From: Kudoa neothunni
Lineage: Eukaryota > Animalia > Cnidaria
Length of the DNA: 64,000 nt
Reading direction: 5' to 3'
Assembly (NCBI GenBank): GCA_964304625.1
Contig: OZ199840.1
Span: 6,064,784 to 6,128,783, forward strand
A model generated the notes under the pieces. It was not told the origin of the DNA and searched no databases. It saw only the letters and a program-made list of their open reading frames with translations. Numbering within the stretch: position 1 is the first letter of the stretch; the number at the start of each line of letters is the position of its first letter. Shown here one piece after another: positions 6,407 to 50,114 of the stretch. Both the position numbers and the translations under genes were made by a program.

Positions 6407-8859
6407 TTTTTATTTTTTAAACTGTTTTATGTATTTTTGTGATATATTAGTTGTTCTCATTCTACTCTTTTTTATTTTAATAATTTAAGAGATTATCCTA
6501 TAAACTCTTGAAGCAACAAACCTTAGCATCGTTAGGCTTGCAGTGTTAGGGAATTGCTTAATTGTTTGTATAATGGGTGGTGGATAATACGTAGTCCATT
6601 CGGAAGAAGGGAAATGAATATTATTCGACAATTTGTTTAAAATTCTGTATTTTATTTGATTGTTGTCGAAAAACTATATCTCGGGTGGAAAAATTCAACT
6701 AAATTATGTTTATAAACAGGGATCGTCGTTTCGACTAAAATTGACTTAAATCGATTTTAATCGTCGAGTTTTTAAAAAATCTTTGATATTTATTATCCAG
6801 GAATACTCAAAACCTTCCAAAAACTTATATGAGTAATAATCGGAGAGAAATTAAAAGTTTTTTGTTGAATTAATCCAAACAAAGAAGACGGAAAACGAAT
6901 TAGTCTTCAATACTGCAAAGTGAAATTACCTCCACAGCAAAATAAATTCAATGTAACATACATCGCTAAAAACGCATTTCAAAACACATCTCTGCCAGTT
7001 ATTTTTTTTGATAGAAAAAACGATAAAATAGAGGAAAATTTGGTTTCTGTTATTGTTCTTGATACCCTTCCATTATCGCTATTTCACAAGAGAAGTTTTT
7101 TATGGGGATTATGTTCCACATTCTTTTTAATTTAATGTGTTCAAACATGTGCACACTCGTACTTCTAAACCAACCAAAATAAACGCCGATTTCAATTGTC
7201 GAATTTTTTTAAAGTGAACGTCAAAAACGGTAATCCCAATTTATAAACATCAATTTAATCCTCCTATGCCACCATGATGGACAGAGTGTCTACTATGGTG
7301 GTTTTCTTAAAATATAACATCCTTTTTAAAGTCTCTTAGTACTTATGTTTCTTTTATTATATTTCACTGGATTTACATGTAGAATATTAAATTATAGCTA
7401 ATTTTTTAAAGTCTGAGATCAATAAATCGTTTATCTTAAAAAAATTCCGCCCATGCCTGGAGGTAAACACCTATCCAGCAAAGTGTGTTTTAAATTTACC
7501 ATTCTAATAATAGTTTTATAATATTGATATTTTACCTACAGATTCTTAAGAATATTTTTATACTTCAAATTAAGTTTGGTCAGGTTAAAATGAGTTAGAG
7601 ATACATAAATTCTAAAAGGAATGTTCATTTCCAGGCGTTTAAGAAGGTGACCTTCCAGTCTATTCTATGATTTCCTAGATAATGCACTACATATTTCATA
7701 ATAATGATGTTTTAATAAATTACACCTGTAAAGATACTCAAATTTAAGTTTTTATTCTAATCTGAGCATAATTACCTCTTTAAGGTGTATTCAATTGAGA
7801 CAAGCTAAGTCTACGAATGATCGTGGACTGTGCTCCTGTCCAGGCAATTAAGGAATTGTCTTATTTTTGTATAATTTCCTAGATTCTTCTAGTGCAGTGC
7901 TTCCCCCATTCATTTTAGTTTCCATACCCCCTACTACTTACGAAGACAACTCCGCACCCTTTCTCAAAAAGGAGATTTAAAATGGATTTATTTTCTGGTT
8001 GGGAAAATGTTTGTGTTAAAATAACATTAAAAAGAAAAAACCCATCTATTTTAACAAGAAACCGAATGTGAAAACAATAAATAAAACAAATAAAATTAAC
8101 AATAAATTAAATGTTTTGAATTTTCTTTCTTGGCTTTTTCGGACAATAATTGGGTCAAAATGGGACTCTTTATCAGATAAAGTTATGAATAAATCATAAT
8201 TTGTAAAGTTACAAGATATGCTAAAATTTTTGTGCAAAATGTCAGATGTTAATAGTTGAGCTTACGCGAAATTTTGGATTTTGTAATTTATTTGTTTAAT
8301 TATAAATTTAAAGTAATTAAACAAAAAAAATCTAAATAACGTAACCTTGACACTAATTAAAATTTAACTCTTACTTGCATTATAGTTTCATTAAAAATAA
8401 TATATAATACAATTTTTAATAATTCATCCATTTTAAAATCTTTTATATGTCGTTTATCTTTCCAATTAAAAGTAAATATTTTATAATTTTTTGCGTTGTT
8501 CCATTTAAAATATAAACAAAATAATTCATTTAGGTACGAAAAAGGAATAAGTTATCGTTTTTATACCATATGCTAAAACAAAGTAGATAGAAGAAACAAA
8601 AATGTTCAAGAATTTTCATCAAATGACTATTTATTTAATACACTTATTTCAGCTTCGATTGTGCATGAATCGCACATGATATATTGTCGAGAGAGATTCT
8701 GATTACTTGGAATCGATACTTGATGTACAAAGTATGCTAAGTGGTCAAATTTTTCGTTGACTCTAGACGTGAATCTCGGACCCCCAGTAACTGTCTCCCG
8801 GAAGCCCTGTTCTGGAGTATTCTCAGATGTTATGGATACATTTATGCAATTCTCCATTA

Positions 8860-9183
8860 TTATGGAATATTCTACGCCATTTCTTTGATAAAACGGGCGT
8901 TCGTAGGAGGTCGTCAGTCTAACAATAAATAACATCGAGGGTTTTATATATATTTCATCAGCAGATTCTGAATAAAAGTGGATCCGAAGATCTTGAGGTA
9001 ATAGACACAATTATTGACAAACTCATTAACCATAAGGGTGATGACACTGATTTTGACGGCGATCTATAAATTGATAACTCATCAAATGTCATTCCTGCGG
9101 AAGAGGGGAAGACAATGACAAGTGGTATTCTCAGCCAACTCGAATTGAAGGGCGAACAAATTTTGAAAATATATATGATATAA
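8860..9183 (+). mobile_element. Decayed pogo/Tigger-type transposase C-terminal fragment
   Basis: Frameshifted translation FYAISLIKRA / EVVSLTINN resembles the DDE_1 end (DAI.LI..AW.EV...TI.N). It is followed by an acidic tail with an internal stop. Confidence 0.35.
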
Positions 9184-9198
9184 ACTAAACTTTTACAT

Positions 9199-9714
9199 CA
9201 GTGGTTCCAAACCGAGATTCAATCGAACCCTCAGGGTTCAGTGAGCTAGTGCCAGGGATTCGACGGACGCGGAAATATTTTATTGTTCGGTCTGCGCCAG
9301 TTTTTATCAGATCCAAAAATACTATAACTAAGTTTCCTATTCTCATTTAAATACAAAGAATGCCACGACGACGAAAAAATATTTACAGAAATTAGCTTTT
9401 TTATTCAAATCATTCACTTTTTAAATTGAAGAATTAATGAAAAAATTTTTCAGTGAAAACTATTCCAAATTTTTACGATATGTGTAAGTATATAATTAAT
9501 TTTAAATGTATACTTATTAATTCACACATCAATGAATTGTCCATTCATGTATAAATATTTATTATTTATAATATTTAAAATAATGATTATTTTACATAAA
9601 AATGTATTTATTATCTGAGGACTTCATACAATAATCATAAAAAGATATGAAGTAAAAAATTAATTATCCTAACAGAGAGGGGTTTGACGAAATCGAAAAT
9701 GTTGAGATTTATTG
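9199..9714. mobile_element. hAT (Charlie/Buster-like) non-autonomous element
   Basis: Left end CAGTGGTTCCAAACC with internal GAACCC/GGGTTC repeats. Degenerate right end GGGGTTTGACG...GTTGAGATTTATTG. No clean TSD. Confidence 0.4.
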
Positions 9715-10703: not shown

Positions 10704-11886
10704 GATGTATTCCCTTATGTTCTGAATTTAGCGTTATGTAAAAAAGGTCTCCACCCACATACCACATAGCTATTATTTACTTATAACAATCCAAGCTAAT
10801 TATAATTGAAGTTTTTCTCAAAATTGATTTTTAAGAACAAATGCATTAGTTAGTGTGAAATTAAATTCAAAATCTGGAAATAATTAACAATGATCATTGA
10901 TTGAATGTTAACAAATTATTTAAATATAATTAGATGCTAAAATAACTCAATTGTTATAATCATTAAATTTATAATGATATAAAAAGTGTTCTAACGTATT
11001 TTAGGCTTAAAATTTAAAATTTTTAATGAAAGTTAACCTTATAAATCGGAATATATACCAAATATCCATACATCCAGAGGTAACTAGATGAACAATTTTC
11101 TTAATAATTTATTGTATTCGAAAGCTGTAACAGAGTTAACTGAACAGACTTTCAAACAAGAATTTTATTTGTAGCTTACTTATATCTACAAATATAGGTG
11201 AGAATTTTATCTTCAAATAACGATTGTGTGAGTTGTAATAAACCAAGAGTTAATAGATGGCATTATTGAAGCATTTCTTGATAAATGTATACATAATATT
11301 TATTGATCAACGAACAAACGCATAATAACTCAACGCCGGAAACTCAATTTCACAAGTGGGAATAAATTCTTGAATAAATTTATCTTTAGGAATTTAGTCA
11401 ATAATATATTTCTTTGTAATCATCGGTTGAATAAAATTAATAAATTTACTGAATTTTTACTTTATCTTCAGTGATAACAAAGTTTTAAATGCATTTATTT
11501 GATTATAAATTAATTCCATTTGTTTTTAAAACGAATTCCCACGGCTTAAACAAGGAAACTAGAAAGAATGAATGCCCTATTTATTGTTGAATATATTAAG
11601 CGGAGTTATTTGATTTAAGTGTCTATTTGATTTTCAGGGCCACAAACTGTATAGTTGATGAATACATTGATCTCTATTTGAGGCATGGATAGAATGTAAA
11701 TGTATTCAACCAATAGAAAAAAATCAAAAACCACCTTGTGAATAATTTCCATTCTATATCTATAGTTTATTTTGGGTTTAGCGCAAACACCAAACCTCAT
11801 ATGTGAATTTGGTCAAAAATAAACCATCTCCAAACAAACCTCAACCCAAAAGGGATAAACCCACTATCCCATGAGAGTAAACAACG

Positions 11887-12243
11887 ATGAACAATGTTTA
11901 CACCATTTTCATTATCATTATGTTTTCCATTTTTATATTGATATTTGTGTTGTATTTATTTTGCTATTGTTTCTCCAAACGTAATTTTGTATTAATTTTG
12001 TCAGCGTTCTAACATTCCTAAAATGTAGTGCAAAACAATCTCGAGCGAAGAAATGCTATAATTCAAGTGGAAATAGGCTCGGAAGTGCATCACATCGTTG
12101 TGGAACCAAATATTGAAATTCCTGCCCCTCCGTACAAATCCCAAACCAGTGTAGAAGTTGATACTGTAACTGAAACCCAACCACCGTCGTATAGAACTAC
12201 CACCACAAACAGTGATAACCGCGTCAAAATATATTATAAATAA
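11887..12243 (+). CDS. Small single-pass membrane protein with PPxY motif (paralog A), 102 aa, 2 exons
   Basis: Exons 11887-11980 and 12029-12243 (48-bp phase-1 GT-AG intron): MNNVYTIFIIIMFSIFILIFVLYLFCYCFSKLQNNLERR...IPAPPYKS...TQPPSYRT...KIYYK*. Confidence 0.75.
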
Positions 12244-12407
12244 ATTCAAATAATAATATAGATAACAATGTGTAATTACTTTTACGTTGAAAAATATTTC
12301 TTCCAACCAACCGTAATCAACAAAAACAAATAACATCTACTAAACGGATGTTTATAACTTTTTGATGTACAAACCAATTTAAATTCTATAAACAATAATC
12401 CATCATA

Positions 12408-12705
12408 ATGTTTATCGATAGTAATACCCAGCCTCATTACTATTCTTTGTTAGATGATGAATCTCTCACTACTATAATTCTATTTTGTCTCTGTATTCTA
12501 CTGATACTAATTGTGCATATACTGTTCGTTAGGATAATTATTAAAAGTAAATCTTTCATTCTGCATAATAATGACGGTTTATTAAGAACTTCGTCGTAGC
12601 CAAGACATCCAAATTAGGGATACGAGCGTAGTAACACCTCCAACATACAACTGGGCCGCTGTCTGTGTAGAAAATATCTCACCTCCACAATATATCACAA
12701 TTTGA
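12408..12705 (+). CDS. Small single-pass membrane protein with two PPxY motifs (paralog B), 85 aa, 2 exons
   Basis: Exons 12408-12546 and 12587-12705 (40-bp phase-1 GT-AG intron): MFIDS...TTIILFCLCILLILIVHILFVRIIIKKLRRSQDIQIRDTSVVTPPTYNWAAVCVENISPPQYITI*. Confidence 0.75.
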
Positions 12706-13859
12706 TTATAGTTTTCTCTAATATATGTGGAATATTCTCAATTTGAAGTTTAATGTATGTTCCTTAATCCTCCTTGCACGGCGCGGAAGAAACTGTCTTA
12801 ATGGTTTTTAATTTCTTTGTGCTATGTTTTAAACAATTTTTCAACTATTTGTAAGATGTTCTGCGTAGGAAATTTAATTAGCTATGGAGCGTTAGTAGGC
12901 TTCAGAACAGAGTCCCCTAATGCATCAATATCGGCTATTTAATAGTAAGGAAAAAATTAACCAAACAAAAATTAAAATTAAACAGATTCCATCTGAAAAT
13001 AGTAATTTCGAACGTGAAACCCACTTCTAAATAAGATAGTGCAAGTAAAATTGATCCGAGCGCACATCAACGGCGGCAGCGTTGGTGTATTAAGTCGGAA
13101 ACAGCAAATTAACAATAAACAGATTCAATCGAATAAAGGTGTCTTGGCTCTAATTTATAATTTAACGTGATTTTTTATGGCATGTATAAGAGGAAAATTT
13201 AAATTAACTCTTGAAATTTGATTTATACATCTTTTCTTGCCAGATAAAATTTGTTATTTGAAAACACTAGATTTGTCGCGTTACTTCTGTCACGTAATCC
13301 TTAATTTTCACTTTATTTTACTTTTTTAAACATTTTCCTTATAAATTTAATAATATCAGAAATAGATTTTCATTGTTACAAAGTTAAGTGAAACGACCGA
13401 AAATTCCACGATTTTTAAACCACATTCTTGATTCTCTCTAATATTCATTAAAATTTAAAGTTGGCCAAAGGAAACGCTTCCATCCTTCTAGAGACAAGCT
13501 TATAGTAACGAAAAGTACATCCGAAAATTAAATATGTTATTTTTGGATCGAGTATGTAATCCGCGGTGAAGTTCTATAATATGCTAAGATATATCATTTA
13601 CTCAATGAAATGTTACATCTTAAATTTTTAAATCTACGATTATAAGATAAAAATATATTTACTCGGTATATATGTGTTTTCCTTAAAAACGAAACATATT
13701 TATGTTTGTAGAGACAACAAAATCATTAAAATTAGCCAATAATAATTTTTTTAATGTAATGTTTTTACGTCGTTCGAAATGATTTAAACTTCTAGAGGAA
13801 TTCCGAAATTTACAGATGGCTTAGATTTTTCTACCCAAGACTAGGTTCAAATTAGTTGG

Positions 13860-17950: not shown

Positions 17951-20357
17951 ATGTCTAAACAAGATAGTTCAATAAATAACTGTGTGACACTGAACGAATC
18001 GGGTGTCGGTGGAGGTATGTATGAGAAGATGGATGGAGGAGAGAGTTGTTCATTGGTAGTGGCGAGCGGTGCAACATCATCATCGTCCTCTGCAACTACA
18101 ACTGCTCCATCCACTCAAGAAGATATCCTCCAAATTCCATCGTCAACACCTCAGAAGTTGTTGTTATCACACAACAGCAAATCCACAACAATAAACTATA
18201 TCACCACAACTGACACAAGCGACGTTGTAAATGGTAGCCGAATTGTGTATTGGTTTGTGGAGAGGATTTAATTTTGTTTTTAAGACTTTACAGATTTACC
18301 GCCCCCCAATTTTGTTGAGTCCACCCTCATGAGCACCAATAATTCGACTGTTGTAAGTGTTAGTGAAAAAACAGGGAGTAAGGCGGTATTGAAAACTGAA
18401 AATTGTGTAAAGGAAACACCTTTTCAACCCGTTCCTTGTACGAACAGTGCAAGTTCAGCAGCGCCCAACTTCAGTCAAGAAAGCAATTGTAATATATTCC
18501 AGTCGTTAGCGAATGCATATAAATTATTTATTTTGGTGTTGAATAGTGACTGTTCGTAAGAACTCAATAGAACCGAGCCACTCAAGCAACATTAGCATTA
18601 ACAAAACAATTCCAGATAATAACCAGGTAAAAATCACACTATTGGACGAAAAATTATGGGAAAAATTTCACACTCATGTCAACGAAATGATTGTCACTAA
18701 GGATGGCAGGTAAAAATCGAAATTAATACCAACAATCGGTGTGCATTGATGATGGCGATTTGTAGGCGTATGTTTCCAGTACTTAAAATAAAAATCGACG
18801 GACTAGAGCCCACATCAATGTACACTGTTACCATTGATTTTTCGGTGTCTGACTCCCATCGATGGAAATTCATGAACGGCAGATGGATACGAGGCAACAA
18901 AGAAGATAACATCAAAAACAGTAGCACCTATATGCATTGCGATTCGCCAAATTTTGGCTCATTCTGGATGAATAATACTATAAGCTTTGCCAAGTTGAAA
19001 ATCAGTAACAAAGTCTCGAAAGATTCTTCCAAAGTTGCTTTCCATCACATTGGCTTCGCTTTAAAGTGTACATATTTTAGATTCAGATCCATTCATTGTT
19101 TAGATATCTTCCGTGTATTCATATTTATTCGATCGATAATACAACTAGGGGACTCACTCATGTGATAACGAAACACTTTGAAAACACTGAATTTGTAGCG
19201 GTGACTGCTTATCAAAATGATGCGATCACTAGACTAAAAGTTAGCTACAATCCATTTGCGAAGGCATTTCTCGACGTAAAACGCTCCGGTAATGATAGCC
19301 CCATTAGCCATTATAATAGTAGCAGTGGAAGCGGTCATTGTCTTAGTCGAGGTAGTTGTTATATTTCAGTTAGCCTGACCCAAACACAATTGTAATATAG
19401 ATATATACAAGCCCTATGATGATAATTATATCAAAAATTTTAACTCAGTGTCTACATCAGCTTCATCCTCTGGAACTAACAACAATAGCAATGGTGGTGC
19501 TGCAAATCAAAGCTGCAGTATTAGCGGCAGCAACAACAACGGCAATAATTCAGTTTCCACTTGTAAAACACAAATTTCGGATATTATTTGTGTCTATTAG
19601 TAGAATTCTTTCGTTAGATCATAAACAGTTAAGCGGCACCAATGATGATAGCTATAGCAATTTGGCAAATAATGTAAATCCATTTTTGTACCAACAAAAT
19701 CTAGCGCAAGATCCCTCTAACAATATTCCCCAAGTTATGGCCCATCATCTAAAACCATCTTGCAACAGTAGCACATCCACCACAACTAACAACAACGGTC
19801 ACAATTTGAGCAGCACTCTAACAAACAGCGATTTGAATAACAGCGCTAACAGTTCACTTGGCATGATCAATCCAACCAATCTCCCACATTATTACGATTA
19901 TCTACAATCTACAACTGAAAACTGTTCGATGAACCCTCGAATTAATGTAGAGACCCGCAACAACTCGCTGCTCTCTTTCTATGACAATAGTGGCAACTTT
20001 AAAACACCCAACTATCCTTATGCGTATCAGTACAATTGTCCAAATAACTACTACTATGACAAGGCGTATTTGTCTGCTGATAATGGAACCTATTTTTATG
20101 CCATCAAACCTGATAATTCCCCCACTCAGCAATCAATAAACACCTCCTTGCACAACAACCATCAAAGTGGCAATGCAGGTGGAAACATTGCTAATTGTAA
20201 CAGTCGTCATATTCCGGTCGAAAACATCCATCAATATAACTACAACTATCAAACCACCGCCTCATTTTATAACAAGGATACCAAATTTCATGAAAAAACC
20301 AACCCCAAACCTAATCATTCATCTCAAACTATTCGTGATGATAAACGATTAGACTGA
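17951..20357 (+). CDS. TBXT: Brachyury (T) subfamily T-box transcription factor, 7 exons
   Basis: Spliced T-box LWEKFHTHVNEMIVTKDGR|RMFPVLKI...HRWKFMNGRW...DSPNFGSFWM..ISFAKLKISNK...|IQIHSLFRYLPCIHI...TEFVAVTAYQNDAITRLKVSYNPFAKAFLD. NEMIVTK, PNFG, (T/S)NK and AKAFLD are Brachyury-type. The termini are S/T/N-rich. Confidence 0.9.
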
Positions 20358-25360: not shown

Positions 25361-25550
25361 GTTATACTATTATACAGTGCGGCATTTATCATTTATAATG
25401 AGGCGTTTATATCAAATGTGATCCACCATGTGAAATAAAGTGGCATCGTTGAAATCTTATTTACCGGTTTTGAACCAATCAGTTAAATTATACAACAAAT
25501 ATTTTAATCATTTTATGGATTAACACATGCTCATGCGCAATATAATTAAA

Positions 25551-26906
25551 ATGCCCCCGGACACCTTCCCTGGTGAACAAATCGGCGCCGCTGCCGATGA
25601 TAAATGTTTCTCAGATATCGATAAAAATAGTGACATTGTGGATGAGCGTAAAAATCCGGAATAAAATTTAAACAAATTTACACCCCTCTTTGCCTTATAG
25701 ATACTTTAGTGACAGAAATTATGAATATTCCCCGAAGTGTAACTAGCGAGAAACTTCTTTCTTTAGTTGCTGAGAAAAAACAAAGTAAACTTAAATAAAA
25801 TTCATCAGCTGAGTCCTCGTAGATAAAGTAACTTATTGGGAGTCAACAATGGAAAAACAAGCCGCCCACTCCACAATGTTAAATGATAGCAGTAAAAAAC
25901 TTTTGTTGGAGATTATTTTTTTAAATGAAATTCTTATTGATAATTTTCAATCGCATAAGCTTTGATCTTGAATCATCATTGAGATTAGGACATTCCAGTT
26001 TGAAAAATTGTTTTATGATGAAAGATATGAAAGTGATTGAGTTGCCTCAAGTTGGTTCATGGGTCACTATAGCTGCAACTGGTGTGATACCTAACAACGA
26101 TTCAATTTGGTTCAATTTTATCGGACGGTTTCCTTTTGGTTGTGAATCCCTAGAAACTATTCCCTCCAGCCAAAACGATAACTTTTCTATTCTACAAAAT
26201 CGACTTATGTAATTACTTTCATTTATAGAATTGTTATTATCGTTCTCAATCTTAGAAAATTTTACCATAACAAATCTAAACGATATAGAAATACCACATT
26301 TGCTCCTAATCAAATGGTAGCTGTGTATGTGAGTAGAGATCGTATGTGGTATCGTGGTTATGTGGTTAATTTGGATAAAAATAGAAAATCAGTTGTCACT
26401 TATCAAGTAGGTTGGTTGTGTAGGATGACGGCGACAATTGTGTCGTTGTTATTGTTGTAAAGTGTGTAAATTTAATGTCATAAATATAGGTTATTCTTGT
26501 AGACTATGGCTATTCAATTATCACATCAACATACGATTTATTCCCCCTGGATGCTATTTTTACTGAATTGGAGCCTCAAGCTGTTAATTTTTGTTTATCC
26601 TCGTTTCAAATGCCACTTCATCATCACTCCAAACCTCCAATCAACTCTCTTGTGTATGATTTTTTGTTATTTATTAGCGTATTAACTCGTTTATTGTGTG
26701 ATTGTGTAGGGACACATTCCATGAACTAACCAAAAATAAGTTGATAGTAGCTCACGTCGATCAAATGTACCGTTAAACTCGATTTTACTACTAAATAAAG
26801 ATATTTTTGTAGTATTGATGATACGGTGTTTGTCACGCTGCACACTCAGAATTACAAAGGCCAAATCCAGTGTGTTAATACTTATCTGAGAAATAGATTT
26901 ATTTGA
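25551..26906 (+). CDS. Single extended-Tudor domain protein (TDRKH/TDRD/AKAP1-like), multi-exon
   Basis: Spliced QMVAVYVSRDRMWYRGYVV...|VILVDYGY......DLFPLDAIFTELEPQAVNFCLS...KNKLIVAHV...VFVTL...VNTYL is a Tudor core with SN-like flanks. The N-terminal exons are less certain. Confidence 0.8.
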
Positions 26907-27157
26907 GGTCGATAATTGATATGAAAGTTTTGTTTCCGATAGAAATTATATTGTTTTTCTGTGCGCTGGAATTGGTTGATTTTGTGTTGATCATAGCAAC
27001 TAACTCGTAACCATGGAGCTGCGTGTAATATAGGACTCCCTATAGAAAACGATGTTTGCGTAGAGAATCAAACCATCGGTTCGTTGTCAGCTCTAAATTA
27101 TAGAAGACAATTATATTTCGCTTGAATTGAGATTGCGTATTTCAATCACACTTTAAA

Positions 27158-30100
27158 ATGATCTCACCTTACCGAATTATTACACGAATTGATTCGCCCC
27201 TTTTCTTACGTTTGTGTGCTGTGTGGCTGTTTGTGTCCAGCCTTATCACGAATGTGTACACAGGTAGAGAGATACTTTATTCTGATTAAAAATCCACATT
27301 AACATTTTTAATGGATTATATTTTTTAATTATTTAATATGATTTAGCGGTTAATATCACCAATAAAGGTTTTGTGTACAAAAATTCTGCTCTCACTCCCG
27401 AACTCGCTGTGCATGAAATGTCACTCACATTTGTAACCACTAAACACAATGGTTTGTTGTTCTATGGAAATAATGCGAAAGCTTACTTTTCAATGGAGCT
27501 ATACTATGGATCTGTTAGGTAGGTGATTTGAATTGACGATGTTTGTTGGTCGCTTGCAACGATAATATGTGCAATTATTTAGAATAAGCGGGAATTTTTC
27601 CAACCAACGCACAACAATGCCATTTATCGGTTTCGTGGGGCACGGTCTAGCTGACGGGAAACCACACCAAGTCGAATTCTTCAAACGATCCGAAGAAATC
27701 ATGGCCATCGTTGATCGTGGCACCTCCAAACGAGACTCCTACATTGTAGCATCTAGTTTTTTAAATGATATCATCAATTTCGACGATATCTATTTGGGTA
27801 ATCACCCCGAGCTGAAAACATTCGACAATTTTCAATCGATGACCAAGACAAACTTTATTGGATGTATTGAAGAGGCCAGTTGGAATTCGTTGGATCTACT
27901 GAGTGACGCCTACTCGGAAATGTCTATTCCTAATTGTGGTGTATTTTACGATCATAAACCAATCACATTTCTCTATTTGGACAGCTACATTATGATGTAC
28001 CGAAGCAGCAAAGCCGATGGGTTCGATTTGGAATTCGACCTGCTTGTCTATCAAAATTTCACCATTATCATCTCTCACAAAGTGAACGATACTAGGTTTG
28101 ATTTGGTTATTTTGGAAGGTAGACTTCAAATGACTCTCTACATTGTCAATAATATTGTTATCAACGCCATCACCGATTCGTTGGTCAGCGATGGAAGTTG
28201 GCACAAGGTATGTACTATTATATGGTGGTAGAATTAGGAATATTGTTTATGGATTAATAATATTTAGGTTAAGATATTCATCCCCGGAAGATCCTCATCA
28301 ACTGCTAACGTTATTTTTAAAGTGGACGAATTCCTTACCGACTCACCATCTCCCATTTTCTACAATGCTGGGAAAAATATAAAATTTGGTGGTTTTGGCT
28401 TCGTTGGCTGTATCGAAAATGTGAGACTAGATCAAAAAACTTATCACCTCGAGAAACACTATCAAAGAAGTGGAATATCAACGTCAGGCTGCAACATCAC
28501 CTTCCAATGCAACCCTAACCCCTGTGTGAACGCTGGCAATTGTATGGCTCTTCAAAACCTCGAGTACACTTGTTTATGTAACGGCAACTCCACCGGTTCT
28601 AATTGTGAACAACGTAATATTCTTTTTATCGTCTATTTATAAGATCTTTTTCCACTATATATAAATAATTTTTAAAATTTGATAATTAGCTGTTGCACCC
28701 AACACCTGCACAGACATACACAAAGCAGGCTTCAAGAGGGACGGCCCAACAATCATTGATGCGGATGGAATAGGACTTTTTGACCCCATTTGGGTCAACT
28801 GCTTCCATATGAATTCCTTCGATAGTGATCGAGCAGTCACTGTAGTCAAACCCATTCAAAGCACCTACAATCTCATTGACGCGCCAAAAAGCTGGGAAAT
28901 CCGCTACAATGTTAGCACCGAATTGCTAAATATTATAGCCGCCAACAGCTTCTACTGCAAACAAACGGTCACCTATCAATGCACCCGTTCTAGGATCACT
29001 CTCGGAAATATCACTTTAATGAACTGGGTGGGTGGAGATGGCCGAGTTCATAACTATTGGAATTCGCGCGCCATCTACGGAAAATGTGAATGTTCTATTC
29101 GAAATAACACCTGTTTCAACAATCAAAATTGCAACTGTGACAACTATGACACAATATCAAGAGTGGATCGAACTGAACTTCAATTCAAAGCTCATCTACC
29201 CATTATCCGAATCAACGCTATGAACATATCCAGCATGTTGGGTTCGAGCGCCAAGCTGGAAGTGGGAGACTTTTTCTGCCAAGGTGATGGCGGAAAATTA
29301 TCCACGGTAACATTTACGGAGGTATACAGTTACCTAGAGGTTGAATCCCTCAATTTGTGGAACGCCGGCTCCTTCCATATCGAATTCAAAACTGATCAAG
29401 CTCGCGGAAACATATTTCTTTATTCACGCGGACGAATCTCGAAAGATTACATTTTACTCTTCTTGAAAAATCCAACCACACTCACCGTAGAAGTTAATTT
29501 GGGAACGTACACTCATATTCTCGATGCAAGTATACTGTCGAAAGCTCCATCTAATTTCGAAGACCAGGAATTCCACTCTGCCAAATTTACTATCAGCAGA
29601 CGTGGCTTCAACCTTACAGTCGACAAGTTGACATACACCAAACCACTTGAAAATAATATCAATGTTGGAGTTTTACTCAACCTTGACAACCTTCCCACAT
29701 TCATTGGAGGTACACCGTTTGATCCATTTTCCGGATTTCGAGGCACAATCCGCAATTTTGTAATTATTTTCATAAATTTTTAAACAACTAGATGATATTT
29801 TAATTGTTTATTAGAGAATAAATGGACAACCATATAAATTGTTTGAAAAAGCAATGAATGAGTCGATTGTAGGAGTGGTGCCGGGTATAACTTCTGCATG
29901 TAGGTCGGTCAGTAACCCATGCAATTCTGGTCGTTGTATGGACCATTATAACTACTACGTGTGTAATTGTGACTACTCTCCATATTATGGATCCCATTGT
30001 CAAAATGAGCAAGGTTTATCTATGAGAGGTGGAGATTTCGCAGTAGCCTACAATCTTGATCCTAGCCTCACACTAACCCAATGGTTCATTTCTGTTGGGT

Positions 30101-31157
30101 TTGTTACCACAAACGCGAGCGCTACATTATTCTCGTTGATCAGTGAAAATACTGATATTTTCTTTTTGGGCAATATGGTCAATGGAGTATTTGGAGTATA
30201 TTATCATTTCAGGGTATTATATATTGGATTTGTTGTTTTTATGTATTCTTCTAAAATTATCGAATGTAGAACGATATTTCCTTCCAATCCAGATCGTTCA
30301 TTATAGAACATTCCGATTTGGGCTACTATCTCAATAATGGCGATCTACACATTATCAAGGTTGAATTCAGCTCCGAGACAATTTATGTTTATATCGATAA
30401 TCGACTGTTTTTGCGAATGATCGAGGAGTACACCACCGAACCAACCACTTTTCAAGAGCCAAGCGCATTCTATCTAGGTGGAGCTATATTGACAAGTGTG
30501 TCTGCTTCCGAGTTGGATCAATATATTGTGTATCCATTCTTGGGGTGCATCACCGGTGGAAAACTTGTCTACAAAGCAAGAGGTATCTACAACAAAATCT
30601 TGGTGGATCCAGTCGATCTTTTTTATATGGGATCATCGGTATGTTAGAAGTTTATCGCTCTCTTATCCCTTAACCCATTCACTAACACAAATAGATTGTA
30701 TTAGTGGGGGATTTCTTAGTTATTTCTTATTTTTACACTTATTTCCATTGTTTATTGATAGATGGTACAAGTTGGCCAGGTGACCAAAGAGAAATGTGGC
30801 CTTGTGAATTTTACTGTTGCTGGAAACGCTCCTCTCATTCCCTACCCTCCTAACCCAGTGGCTGGCGACACAAGTAGCTTTGAACGTCGCGTGCCTCTTG
30901 GTGATAGTTGGGGATCAACACTGCTCGGTTTGGGAGTGTTTCTTTTCATACTCATTATTCTAATAATGGTCTTTGTGTTGAAGTGGTATTCTCGAAACAT
31001 CGGCTGCTATCAAACCGAAGAAGGAAACCTCGCCAAAACAGGAAACGTAATTGGCATCCTACAAAACAACTCATTTAGATCGGACGACGAATCCGAAAAA
31101 AGCCCTCTTATAACAGAAAATCGAGACATAATCGCAACCGAAACCGGATACATATAG
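27158..31157 (+). CDS. Contactin-associated protein / Neurexin IV-like cell-junction receptor
   Basis: Signal-peptide exon at 27158, then LamG-LamG-EGF(CNPNPCVNAGNC)-fibrinogen-like(IDADGIGLFDPIWVNC; NWVGGDGRVHNYW; CNCD)-LamG-EGF-LamG-TM, a band-4.1-type motif (GCYQTEE) and a PDZ-type tail TETGYI*. Confidence 0.9.
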
Positions 31158-49200: not shown

Positions 49201-50114
49201 ATGGAAGAAGCAATACGCGATCAAGTTGGTAATGTTCCCAAAGACAAAGTAATATTTATTCTATCAATTAAAATGTTATCATTTCGGTATGTTATCATTT
49301 TTGGCGTTAGGTCCTGGAACTTAATTTAATTTCATGCCCTCCAATCGACTTGAAACAACTTGAACCATATACCTCGTTATGTGCTCTAGCATTGTCTGAT
49401 AATGATATAACTTCATTGGAGGATCTACCTGAGTTTAAAGAATTGATCACGGTATATAATTATGATATGACGTGTTTTTTATTTCAGTGTGATTGTTGTA
49501 ATGTGTAGTTGGATCTGTCCGGAAACCGAATTGCAAACGGGTTCGAAGTTCTTAGCACCAAATGTAATCAGATAACCGGTCTCGATTTATCCAGAAATCC
49601 AATTGAAAATCTGGATGATCTTAAGTGTTTATCAGATATAATTAATTTGGAAAGTCTCTGTTTGGAAGAATGTCCTGTTACCGACAATGCCAGCTATAGA
49701 CCAACTATATTTTCAATATGTGAGAACCTGATTGCGTTGGATGGATTGGATGCGGATGGACACCCAGTAGATACGTCTGAGGAGGAATACGATGACGACG
49801 ACGAAGATGAGGATGACGATGAAGAGACGTCCACCAACTCTGACACTCGTCTAGAGGTTCTTCTTGGTGATGATATTCCTAGTGAGCTGGATGATAGCGA
49901 ATTTCAGATGGATGATTCTGCTTTGAATGAAGCCCAATCGCTCAATGAAAGATCAACCACTTTGAATGAATCGGTTGTCGAGAATGATGTTGATTCAGCG
50001 GAAATGGCGTCATCATCGAAAGTCACATCGGAAGAAAGTGCTGAAAAACGTCCAATCTCAGATTCTATTGAGGGAGTTATTCATCCATCACCCACCAAAA
50101 AACCTAAAGTCTAA
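49201..50114 (+). CDS. ANP32: Acidic leucine-rich nuclear phosphoprotein 32 family protein, 3 exons
   Basis: Exons 49201-49248, 49311-49451 and 49509-50114: VLELNL..C, LRRs (LDLSGNRI, LDLSRNPI), LRR cap (CPVT...YR..IF....L..LDG), an acidic tail and a terminal NLS PTKKPKV. Confidence 0.92.

Follow-up and report, generated by a model that had tools for sequence, protein, structure and literature searches.

The question raised by this locus is whether two very small, adjacent genes encode genuine membrane proteins and, if so, what reads the Pro-Tyr (PY) motifs in their tails. Motifs of the PPxY type bind group-I WW domains, above all those of Nedd4-family ligases. The two genes, here called A and B, lie in a stretch of 64,000 nucleotides (the window) from Kudoa neothunni, a myxozoan parasite of yellowfin tuna muscle, in the company of genes for MFAP1, a T-box protein, a laminin-G/EGF membrane protein, and ANP32. 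In the original prediction, A and B were regarded as an anciently duplicated pair of proteins with a transmembrane (TM) helix and PPxY motifs, and as candidates for a lineage-specific system of Nedd4 adaptors or for host-directed effectors.

Gene models and splicing

The K. neothunni genome consists of three chromosomes (40.2 Mb, GC 30.4%) and a mitochondrial contig of 18,219 bases; it was assembled from approximately sevenfold read coverage, and the RNA was insufficient for annotation (PMC12239612). Its introns have a median length of 49 nt and a GC content of 26.0%, and its exons a median of 112 nt and a GC content of 36.8% (PMC12239612). The order of genes is conserved with K. sp. trachurus and K. 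iwatai (PMC12239612). The assembly searched in the present study comprised 40,260,978 bases in four contigs, i.e., the mitochondrial contig and three of 17,154,348, 12,040,071, and 11,048,340 bases.

Genes A and B were each modelled with two exons, encoding 102 and 85 aa, respectively (Table 1), and lie co-oriented and closely spaced on the same strand, as had been described. Gene A has no upstream coding exon because an in-frame stop is present at 11878 and exon 1 contains no AG. An upstream ectodomain exon was also looked for in gene B and was not found; a possible 33-nt upstream intron in this gene (12421-12453) would only shorten the N-terminus. The arrangement of A and B as one gene was ruled out, as the second tail would face outwards.

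Table 1. Features of genes A and B in the window and of related loci elsewhere in the K. neothunni genome.
Feature	Position	Strand	Remarks
Gene A exon 1	11887..11980	+	Start codon, 6-residue N-terminus, TM helix aa 7-25, juxtamembrane CxC aa 26-28, K31
Gene A intron (predicted)	11981..12028	+	48 nt, phase 1, GTAATT donor, CTAAC branch-like motif at -17, TAG acceptor
Gene A exon 2	12029..12243	+	Cytosolic tail to TAA; GC 40.5%, codon log-odds +20.7 bits, best of six frames
APPY, non-canonical PY-like motif of A	12124..12135	+	aa 64-67
PPSY, canonical PPxY of A	12181..12192	+	aa 83-86
Intergenic spacer A/B	12244..12407	+	164 bp, GC 23%
Gene B exon 1	12408..12546	+	Acidic 22-residue N-terminus without signal peptide, TM helix aa 23-41 (C27, C29), R42..K46
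Gene B intron (predicted)	12547..12586	+	40 nt, phase 1, GTAAAT donor, AAG acceptor
Gene B exon 2	12587..12705	+	Basic stop-transfer residues, tail to TGA; GC 43.9%, codon log-odds +10.0 bits, best of six frames
PPTY, canonical PPxY of B	12637..12648	+	aa 64-67
PPQY, canonical PPxY of B	12682..12693	+	aa 79-82; overlaps C-terminal YxxI tyrosine-sorting-like motif
Third ectodomain-less TM microgene	L038:4421-4765 (C3:3.585 Mb)	+	About 101 aa, 39-nt phase-1 intron, PPKY and PPGY
Signal peptide-VWC-like-TM-PPxY gene	L041:4371-5130 (C2:0.522 Mb)	-	Three PPxY
Signal peptide-VWC-like-TM-PPxY gene	L039:5095-5880 (C3:3.510 Mb)	-	Four PPxY
Four-helix membrane protein ending in two PPxY	L042:4330-5215 (C1:3.339 Mb)	-	LAPTM4-like layout; no Pfam support
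Single-WW (WAC/WBP4-like) gene	L033:5650-6430 (C1:16.378 Mb)	-	Small, adjoins RPL11; candidate alternative reader of the tails

Three DNA runs (X1, X3, and X4), which represent one sample, probably taken from the same fish as the assembly, pass through both introns and contain no differing letter at the locus; the RNA run had no read there. The splicing of A and B is predicted from the gene models, and the reads do not decide it. For comparison, we used 38 reference introns of 33-67 nt (32 ending in TAG, three in CAG, and three in AAG), and the resulting splice statistics are approximate because these introns were hand-picked from our own rough gene-finder predictions. The intron of A is typical of this set and was predicted exactly by a simple gene finder in whose training this locus was masked. 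Regarding gene B, branch-like motifs lie at -13, -16, and -19 from the acceptor at 12586, and no earlier AG follows them; the acceptor is, however, of the AAG type (3/38 references). An alternative TAG acceptor at 12599 is out of frame and outscores 12586 on a crude matrix; its use would skip an AG 13 nt upstream (7/38) and would entail a GC-rich 3' end (2/38) and distant branch-like motifs. We favour 12586. Two further acceptors, 12604 and 12631, are in frame and retain both PPxY motifs. Nested (stwintron) splicing was considered as a means of rescuing 12599 and was rejected, as no fitting sequence was found.

The coding character of the second exons agrees with these models, with a GC content of 40.5% in A and 43.9% in B, whereas the introns have 27% and the spacer 23%. 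When the window was scanned for an ATG followed by a TM helix, an intron of 30-90 nt, and a PPxY motif, exactly the A and B loci were returned, whereas no match was obtained in the reversed window or in 50 block-wise dinucleotide-preserving shuffles; the same scan over 104 kb of other genome loci gave one match. The original observation was partly confirmed, and the models and their motifs go beyond chance.

It is nevertheless conceivable that one or both models are wrong or that the genes are decaying, such that B is spliced at 12599 and lacks a PY motif, or that the two loci, no longer transcribed, are relics of the signal peptide-VWC-TM-PPxY family described below. The empty RNA run, the lack of homologues, the preference of the crude matrix for 12599, and the rarity of AAG acceptors are in keeping with such an explanation. 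We consider it quite improbable: both frames are intact in the DNA contigs, the weaknesses of acceptor 12599 count against it, and it leaves unexplained two PPxY motifs in the downstream frame of B (residue-shuffle P = 4e-5), which is exactly the frame in which exon 2 is coding-like.

Topology and PY motifs

TM helices were called from hydropathy and charge bias, and one helix per protein was found, as had been claimed (KD19 of 3.21 for residues 7-25 of A and 3.45 for residues 23-41 of B). No basic residue precedes either helix, and the 15 residues behind it contain three K/R in A and five in B, in line with the basic stop-transfer residues described previously. Because this charge distribution is positive-inside, both proteins are predicted to adopt an N-out/C-in single-pass topology without a signal peptide, with their tails in the cytosol. 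Both tails are short, low-complexity sequences. The phase-1 intron noted behind the helix was recovered in each gene model, five or six codons after the helix.

The description of a cysteine-containing helix as a common feature held for the single helix, but not for the cysteines: C26 and C28 of A lie past the helix core, while C27 and C29 of B lie within the outer half of the helix. The juxtamembrane cysteines of A are a possible palmitoylation site. Two PY motifs approximately 15-20 aa apart had also been attributed to each protein, and the spacing was borne out (19 aa in A and 15 aa in B). Both motifs of B are canonical. In A, however, APPY is neither PPxY nor LPxY, and PPSY is the single canonical motif (P = 0.024 for one PPxY upon residue shuffling of exon 2). 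In the yeast protein Rcr1, the non-canonical VPEY can be the main binder of Rsp5 (PMC5578492), which makes APPY credible as a motif. The TM + PY adaptor architecture as such, namely, a single helix, a cytosolic tail, and at least one canonical PPxY after the helix, was found in both proteins. The YxxI at the end of B may serve in sorting.

Relationship between A and B and search for homologues

Database searches were run exon by exon, and the joined proteins were translated and aligned with each other locally. A word search with A exon 2 and B exon 1 gave no candidate homologue, and a HMMER search of A exon 2 against 1.84 billion representatives gave no credible one, its single match being rejected as a low-complexity repeat protein. 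A language-model search was empty for A and gave only beta-helix noise in the case of B, and a Pfam scan of the individual exons to E = 5 returned hydrophobic noise only, with no match to the WBP-1, Shisa, or RCR families. Within its own genome, A exon 2 matched itself only. This blank is weak because close Kudoa proteins are missing from the databases even in the case of ANP32, a conserved control for which no Kudoa-labelled orthologue was present in them.

Little identity between A and B had been anticipated, and this was confirmed: the local protein score was 37 against a block-shuffled null mean of 34 (P = 0.30), and no DNA similarity was detected, with a best match of 15 nt. An ungapped alignment of the helices (T6-K31 of A with T21-K46 of B) places both phase-1 introns after the same lysine. 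The proposed old duplication is plausible from the gene models, with the same intron column and phase, adjacency, and shared strand on its side, although the similarity does not exceed the null. The shared intron position is a weak sign of paralogy because phase-1 introns behind a TM helix are general in this genome.

Other TM + PPxY genes in the genome

The pair is not alone. A genome-wide pattern of two PPxY motifs 36-66 nt apart gave 20 matches against three for a control pattern; 12 of the 20 are in frame, and seven of these 12, in six genes, follow a TM exon. Five more TM + PPxY genes were found in this way. One is a third TM microgene that resembles A and B in having no ectodomain (Table 1). 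Three others, at C2:0.52, C3:3.50, and C3:3.51 Mb, encode a signal peptide, a VWC-like cysteine domain, which was recognised by eye and not called by Pfam, a TM helix, and two to four PPxY motifs; those at C2:0.522 and C3:3.510 Mb, with three and four PPxY, are clear paralogues on different chromosomes. The last is the four-helix, LAPTM4-like protein. In all of the single-pass TM-PPxY genes found, the TM exon is followed by a phase-1 intron. PPxY motifs are, accordingly, kept on proteins that resemble the parasite's own membrane inventory. As to the claim of a new, lineage-specific family, no homologue was found, a weak blank as stated above, and A and B belong to a set of many such genes in this genome.

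Comparison with known PY adaptors

The design of A and B is well known and common in this genome, and as genes they are ordinary. Short TM + PY proteins bind Nedd4/Rsp5 and show very low conservation outside the motifs; Commissureless, PRRG4, Rcr1, and CYYR1 control the surface level of other membrane proteins, with topology and motifs alone being conserved (PMC5578492). Drosophila Commissureless and vertebrate PRRG1-4 resemble A and B in being short and single-pass, with no signal sequence, a cytosolic tail carrying two PY motifs, and little conservation elsewhere (PMC5578492). However, neither A nor B has the extended GLPSY(D/E)xA(L/V) motif of these proteins, and both differ further in having no Gla or propeptide region, no Pfam match, and far shorter ectodomains of 6 and 22 residues. 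The yeast Rsp5 adaptors Rcr1 and Rcr2 also have a single TM helix, and Rcr1 pairs PPSY with VPEY much as A, which has juxtamembrane cysteines, pairs PPSY with APPY; A and B are, in contrast, about half as long, show no detectable sequence relationship, and come from a genome in which a counterpart of Rsp5 was not found.

Members of the Shisa-like/STMC6 group (WBP1, WBP1L, VOPP1, TMEM92, and CYYR1), for which an adaptor role has been proposed, likewise have a single TM helix followed by PPxY. They are defined by a six-cysteine C*C*CC*CC ectodomain (PMC5578492), which A and B lack together with a signal peptide; the six residues of A and 22 residues of B before the helix contain no such ectodomain, and those of B contain no cysteine. 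PMEPA1 and LDLRAD4 carry the Smad-interaction motif PPNR between two PY motifs, whereas PPNR is absent from both PY spacers in A and B. In DGCR2, LDLa, C-type lectin, and VWC domains form an ectodomain before the helix, for which A and B have no exon. The signal peptide-VWC-TM-PPxY genes at C3:3.50-3.51 and C2:0.52 Mb are DGCR2-like and share with A and B a TM exon, a phase-1 intron (41-50 nt), and a terminal exon with multiple PPxY motifs; they differ in their signal peptide and cysteine-rich ectodomain and in the position of the intron, 17-22 residues after the helix rather than 5-6. Compared pairwise with A or B, they show marginal similarity at best (lowest P = 0.04, uncorrected).

Search for a Nedd4-type partner

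The role of A and B in a Nedd4 adaptor system is backed by their TM/PPxY architecture, but an endogenous ligase, looked for by profiles and DNA patterns, was not found. A HECT profile matched one gene in the genome at any E-value up to 10, UBR5 (L036, C1:5.157-5.164 Mb), and did not detect HUWE1, TRIP12, UBE3, or a Nedd4-type HECT ligase. A WW profile matched PRPF40A, TCERG1, PQBP1, and one WAC/WBP4-like single-WW gene, and the detected WW domains appear to be of the spliceosomal/nuclear type only. A tyrosine-pocket histidine is typical of PPxY-binding WW domains, and, except for one PRPF40A domain, those detected are without it. Weaker WW-profile matches at two loci (L030 and L031) were not WW genes, and matches to an HTCFN pattern were neither WW nor HECT genes. 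Five DNA patterns, one for the group-I WW core and four for Nedd4 HECT motifs, gave scattered matches that were co-located neither with one another nor with C2 matches, and profiles for Ndfip, arrestin-C, TEAD, and the dystrophin EF-hand gave nothing over the cut-off in the genome.

This blank is not trivial, and short exons alone do not blind the search, because the control profiles, matching pieces of 25-45 residues, recovered VPS28 as well as approximately eleven E2 and approximately twelve USP loci. On the other hand, a C2 profile found only four loci in the genome, which suggests that diverged domains were missed, and the blank rests on a low-coverage assembly (about 7x reads). We regard the true absence of the Nedd4 family from K. 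neothunni as about evenly balanced. What appears to be new is the detection of one HECT ligase, UBR5, and of nuclear/spliceosomal WW domains only, beside a large PPxY repertoire. We know of no animal without Nedd4 ligases, and, if real, their absence would be a striking loss for an animal, the HECT and group-I WW network of which would be extremely reduced. Nedd4-family ligases were present in all holozoan lineages surveyed (PMC3673628). In the available portion of a Notch-pathway survey, 14 components are given as lost in myxozoans, a list that does not include Nedd4 (PMC12166595), which speaks against a loss; beyond this survey, the literature searched contained nothing on myxozoan PPxY proteins, HECT ligases, or WW proteins.

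A reader of another type may have taken over if the Nedd4 family has been lost, A and B then being trafficking tags or adaptors that operate without a HECT ligase. Candidates would be a WW protein put to a new use, e.g., that of the single-WW gene at C1:16.378 Mb, or else a factor of tyrosine-based sorting or an ESCRT accessory. This possibility gains from the failure to detect a Nedd4-type gene or a group-I WW domain despite working controls, from the precedent of RSP5 loss in microsporidia (PMC5913265), and from the retention of ESCRT, the orientation of the tails towards the parasite cytosol, and the YxxI end of B. We nevertheless consider it rather unlikely, since two prolines are strictly kept before the tyrosine in many genes, for which WW binding is the simplest explanation, nearly all of the detected WW domains lack the pocket histidine, and no alternative reader was identified.

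Possible functions of A and B

The reading that we prefer, tentatively and at slightly less than an even chance, is that A and B are minimal endogenous WW-docking membrane adaptors that direct cargo through a Nedd4/Itch-type ligase to disposal by ESCRT. They would be real, expressed genes for type III (N-out, C-in) single-pass proteins, part of the genome-wide TM + PPxY set, and would act inside the parasite's own cells like adaptors of the Commissureless, PRRG, and Rcr1 types. The helix would seat A and B in a secretory or endosomal membrane and pick a partner membrane protein, and the paired PY motifs would, according to established PPxY-WW biochemistry, dock the tandem WW domains of the ligase. 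Ubiquitinated cargo might then be passed by ESCRT to the lysosome; among the ESCRT-0/I/III parts, VHS, VPS28, a weak UEV, and Snf7 were found by profile match. The ligase itself may be too diverged or intron-split for our searches, or may be missing from the low-coverage assembly.

Another possibility is that A and B are host-directed and recruit host Nedd4/Itch/WWP or other WW proteins at the membranes of infected fish muscle fibres. Because the tail faces inwards in the parasite's membrane, reading by the host needs a delivery route, which could be provided by vesicles or by insertion at the interface. A Kudoa parasite, K. thyrsites, lives within muscle fibres without inflammation (PMC9279243), which fits this explanation, as do the many divergent copies in tandem arrays and the absence of a detected endogenous ligase. 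A precedent is also available in Toxoplasma GRA14, a membrane protein that recruits host ESCRT through late-domain motifs facing the host cytosol (PMC8700025), and in viral PPxY late domains, with which A and B share short linear motifs on membrane proteins that could recruit host ubiquitin/ESCRT. GRA14, however, reaches the vacuole membrane by secretion, its tail lying in the host cytosol, and uses PTAP/YPXnL motifs (PMC8700025). Their predicted topology argues against a host target, and they have no signal peptide or export signal; moreover, the same motif occurs on receptor-like and LAPTM-like proteins, and the retention of Nedd4 in myxozoans is implied by the available portion of the Notch survey (PMC12166595). 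We accordingly regard a host-directed role as unlikely. A PPxY effector family in a metazoan parasite has not been described in the literature searched.

A broader scenario, which we consider doubtful, is that the Nedd4 family and all PPxY-binding WW proteins were lost, yet approximately twenty small PPxY-tailed membrane proteins were kept and multiplied, and that these hijack fish ligases or are read by a new non-Nedd4 protein. If the absence of Nedd4 is true, the PPxY repertoire becomes a testable candidate for the handling of the muscle fibre by Kudoa plasmodia or for a new motif reader. If A and B are instead the ordinary endogenous adaptors that we prefer, standard gene calling and homology searches overlook many unannotated PY-tailed microproteins retained in an animal genome that is among the most reduced, a result of use for annotation and of modest importance for biology.

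Other features of the window

Several observations were made around the pair. Upstream of A, a spliced orphan gene is located on the opposite strand (8627-9350, -), the last exon of which has no Pfam match. The densest AAACC/GGTTT cluster of the window lies directly upstream of gene A (11701-11900) and includes three copies of TAAACC, the telomere motif of the species; it is perhaps a promoter element or a telomere-like remnant. In high-depth contigs of the DNA runs, 12792-12816 was joined to 11721-11738. The join spans a 15-nt palindrome and most likely reflects a chance match, at the 90% setting, to an unrelated repeat of the host.

Further downstream, a Brachyury-like T-box gene with short introns (17951-20357, +) appears intact by eye; the loss of developmental genes is known in this lineage. 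It is followed by a large Caspr/neurexin-IV-like gene (about 25500-31157, +) with laminin G, EGF, and fibrinogen-like domains, a TM helix, and a short tail. The best match of the ANP32 gene (49509-50114) was NP_001134049.1, filed as Salmo salar ANP32E, with 53% identity over the whole query, whereas true fish proteins matched at about 43% over 40% of the query; on this comparison, NP_001134049.1 probably originated as a myxozoan transcript that entered a salmon cDNA set by contamination.
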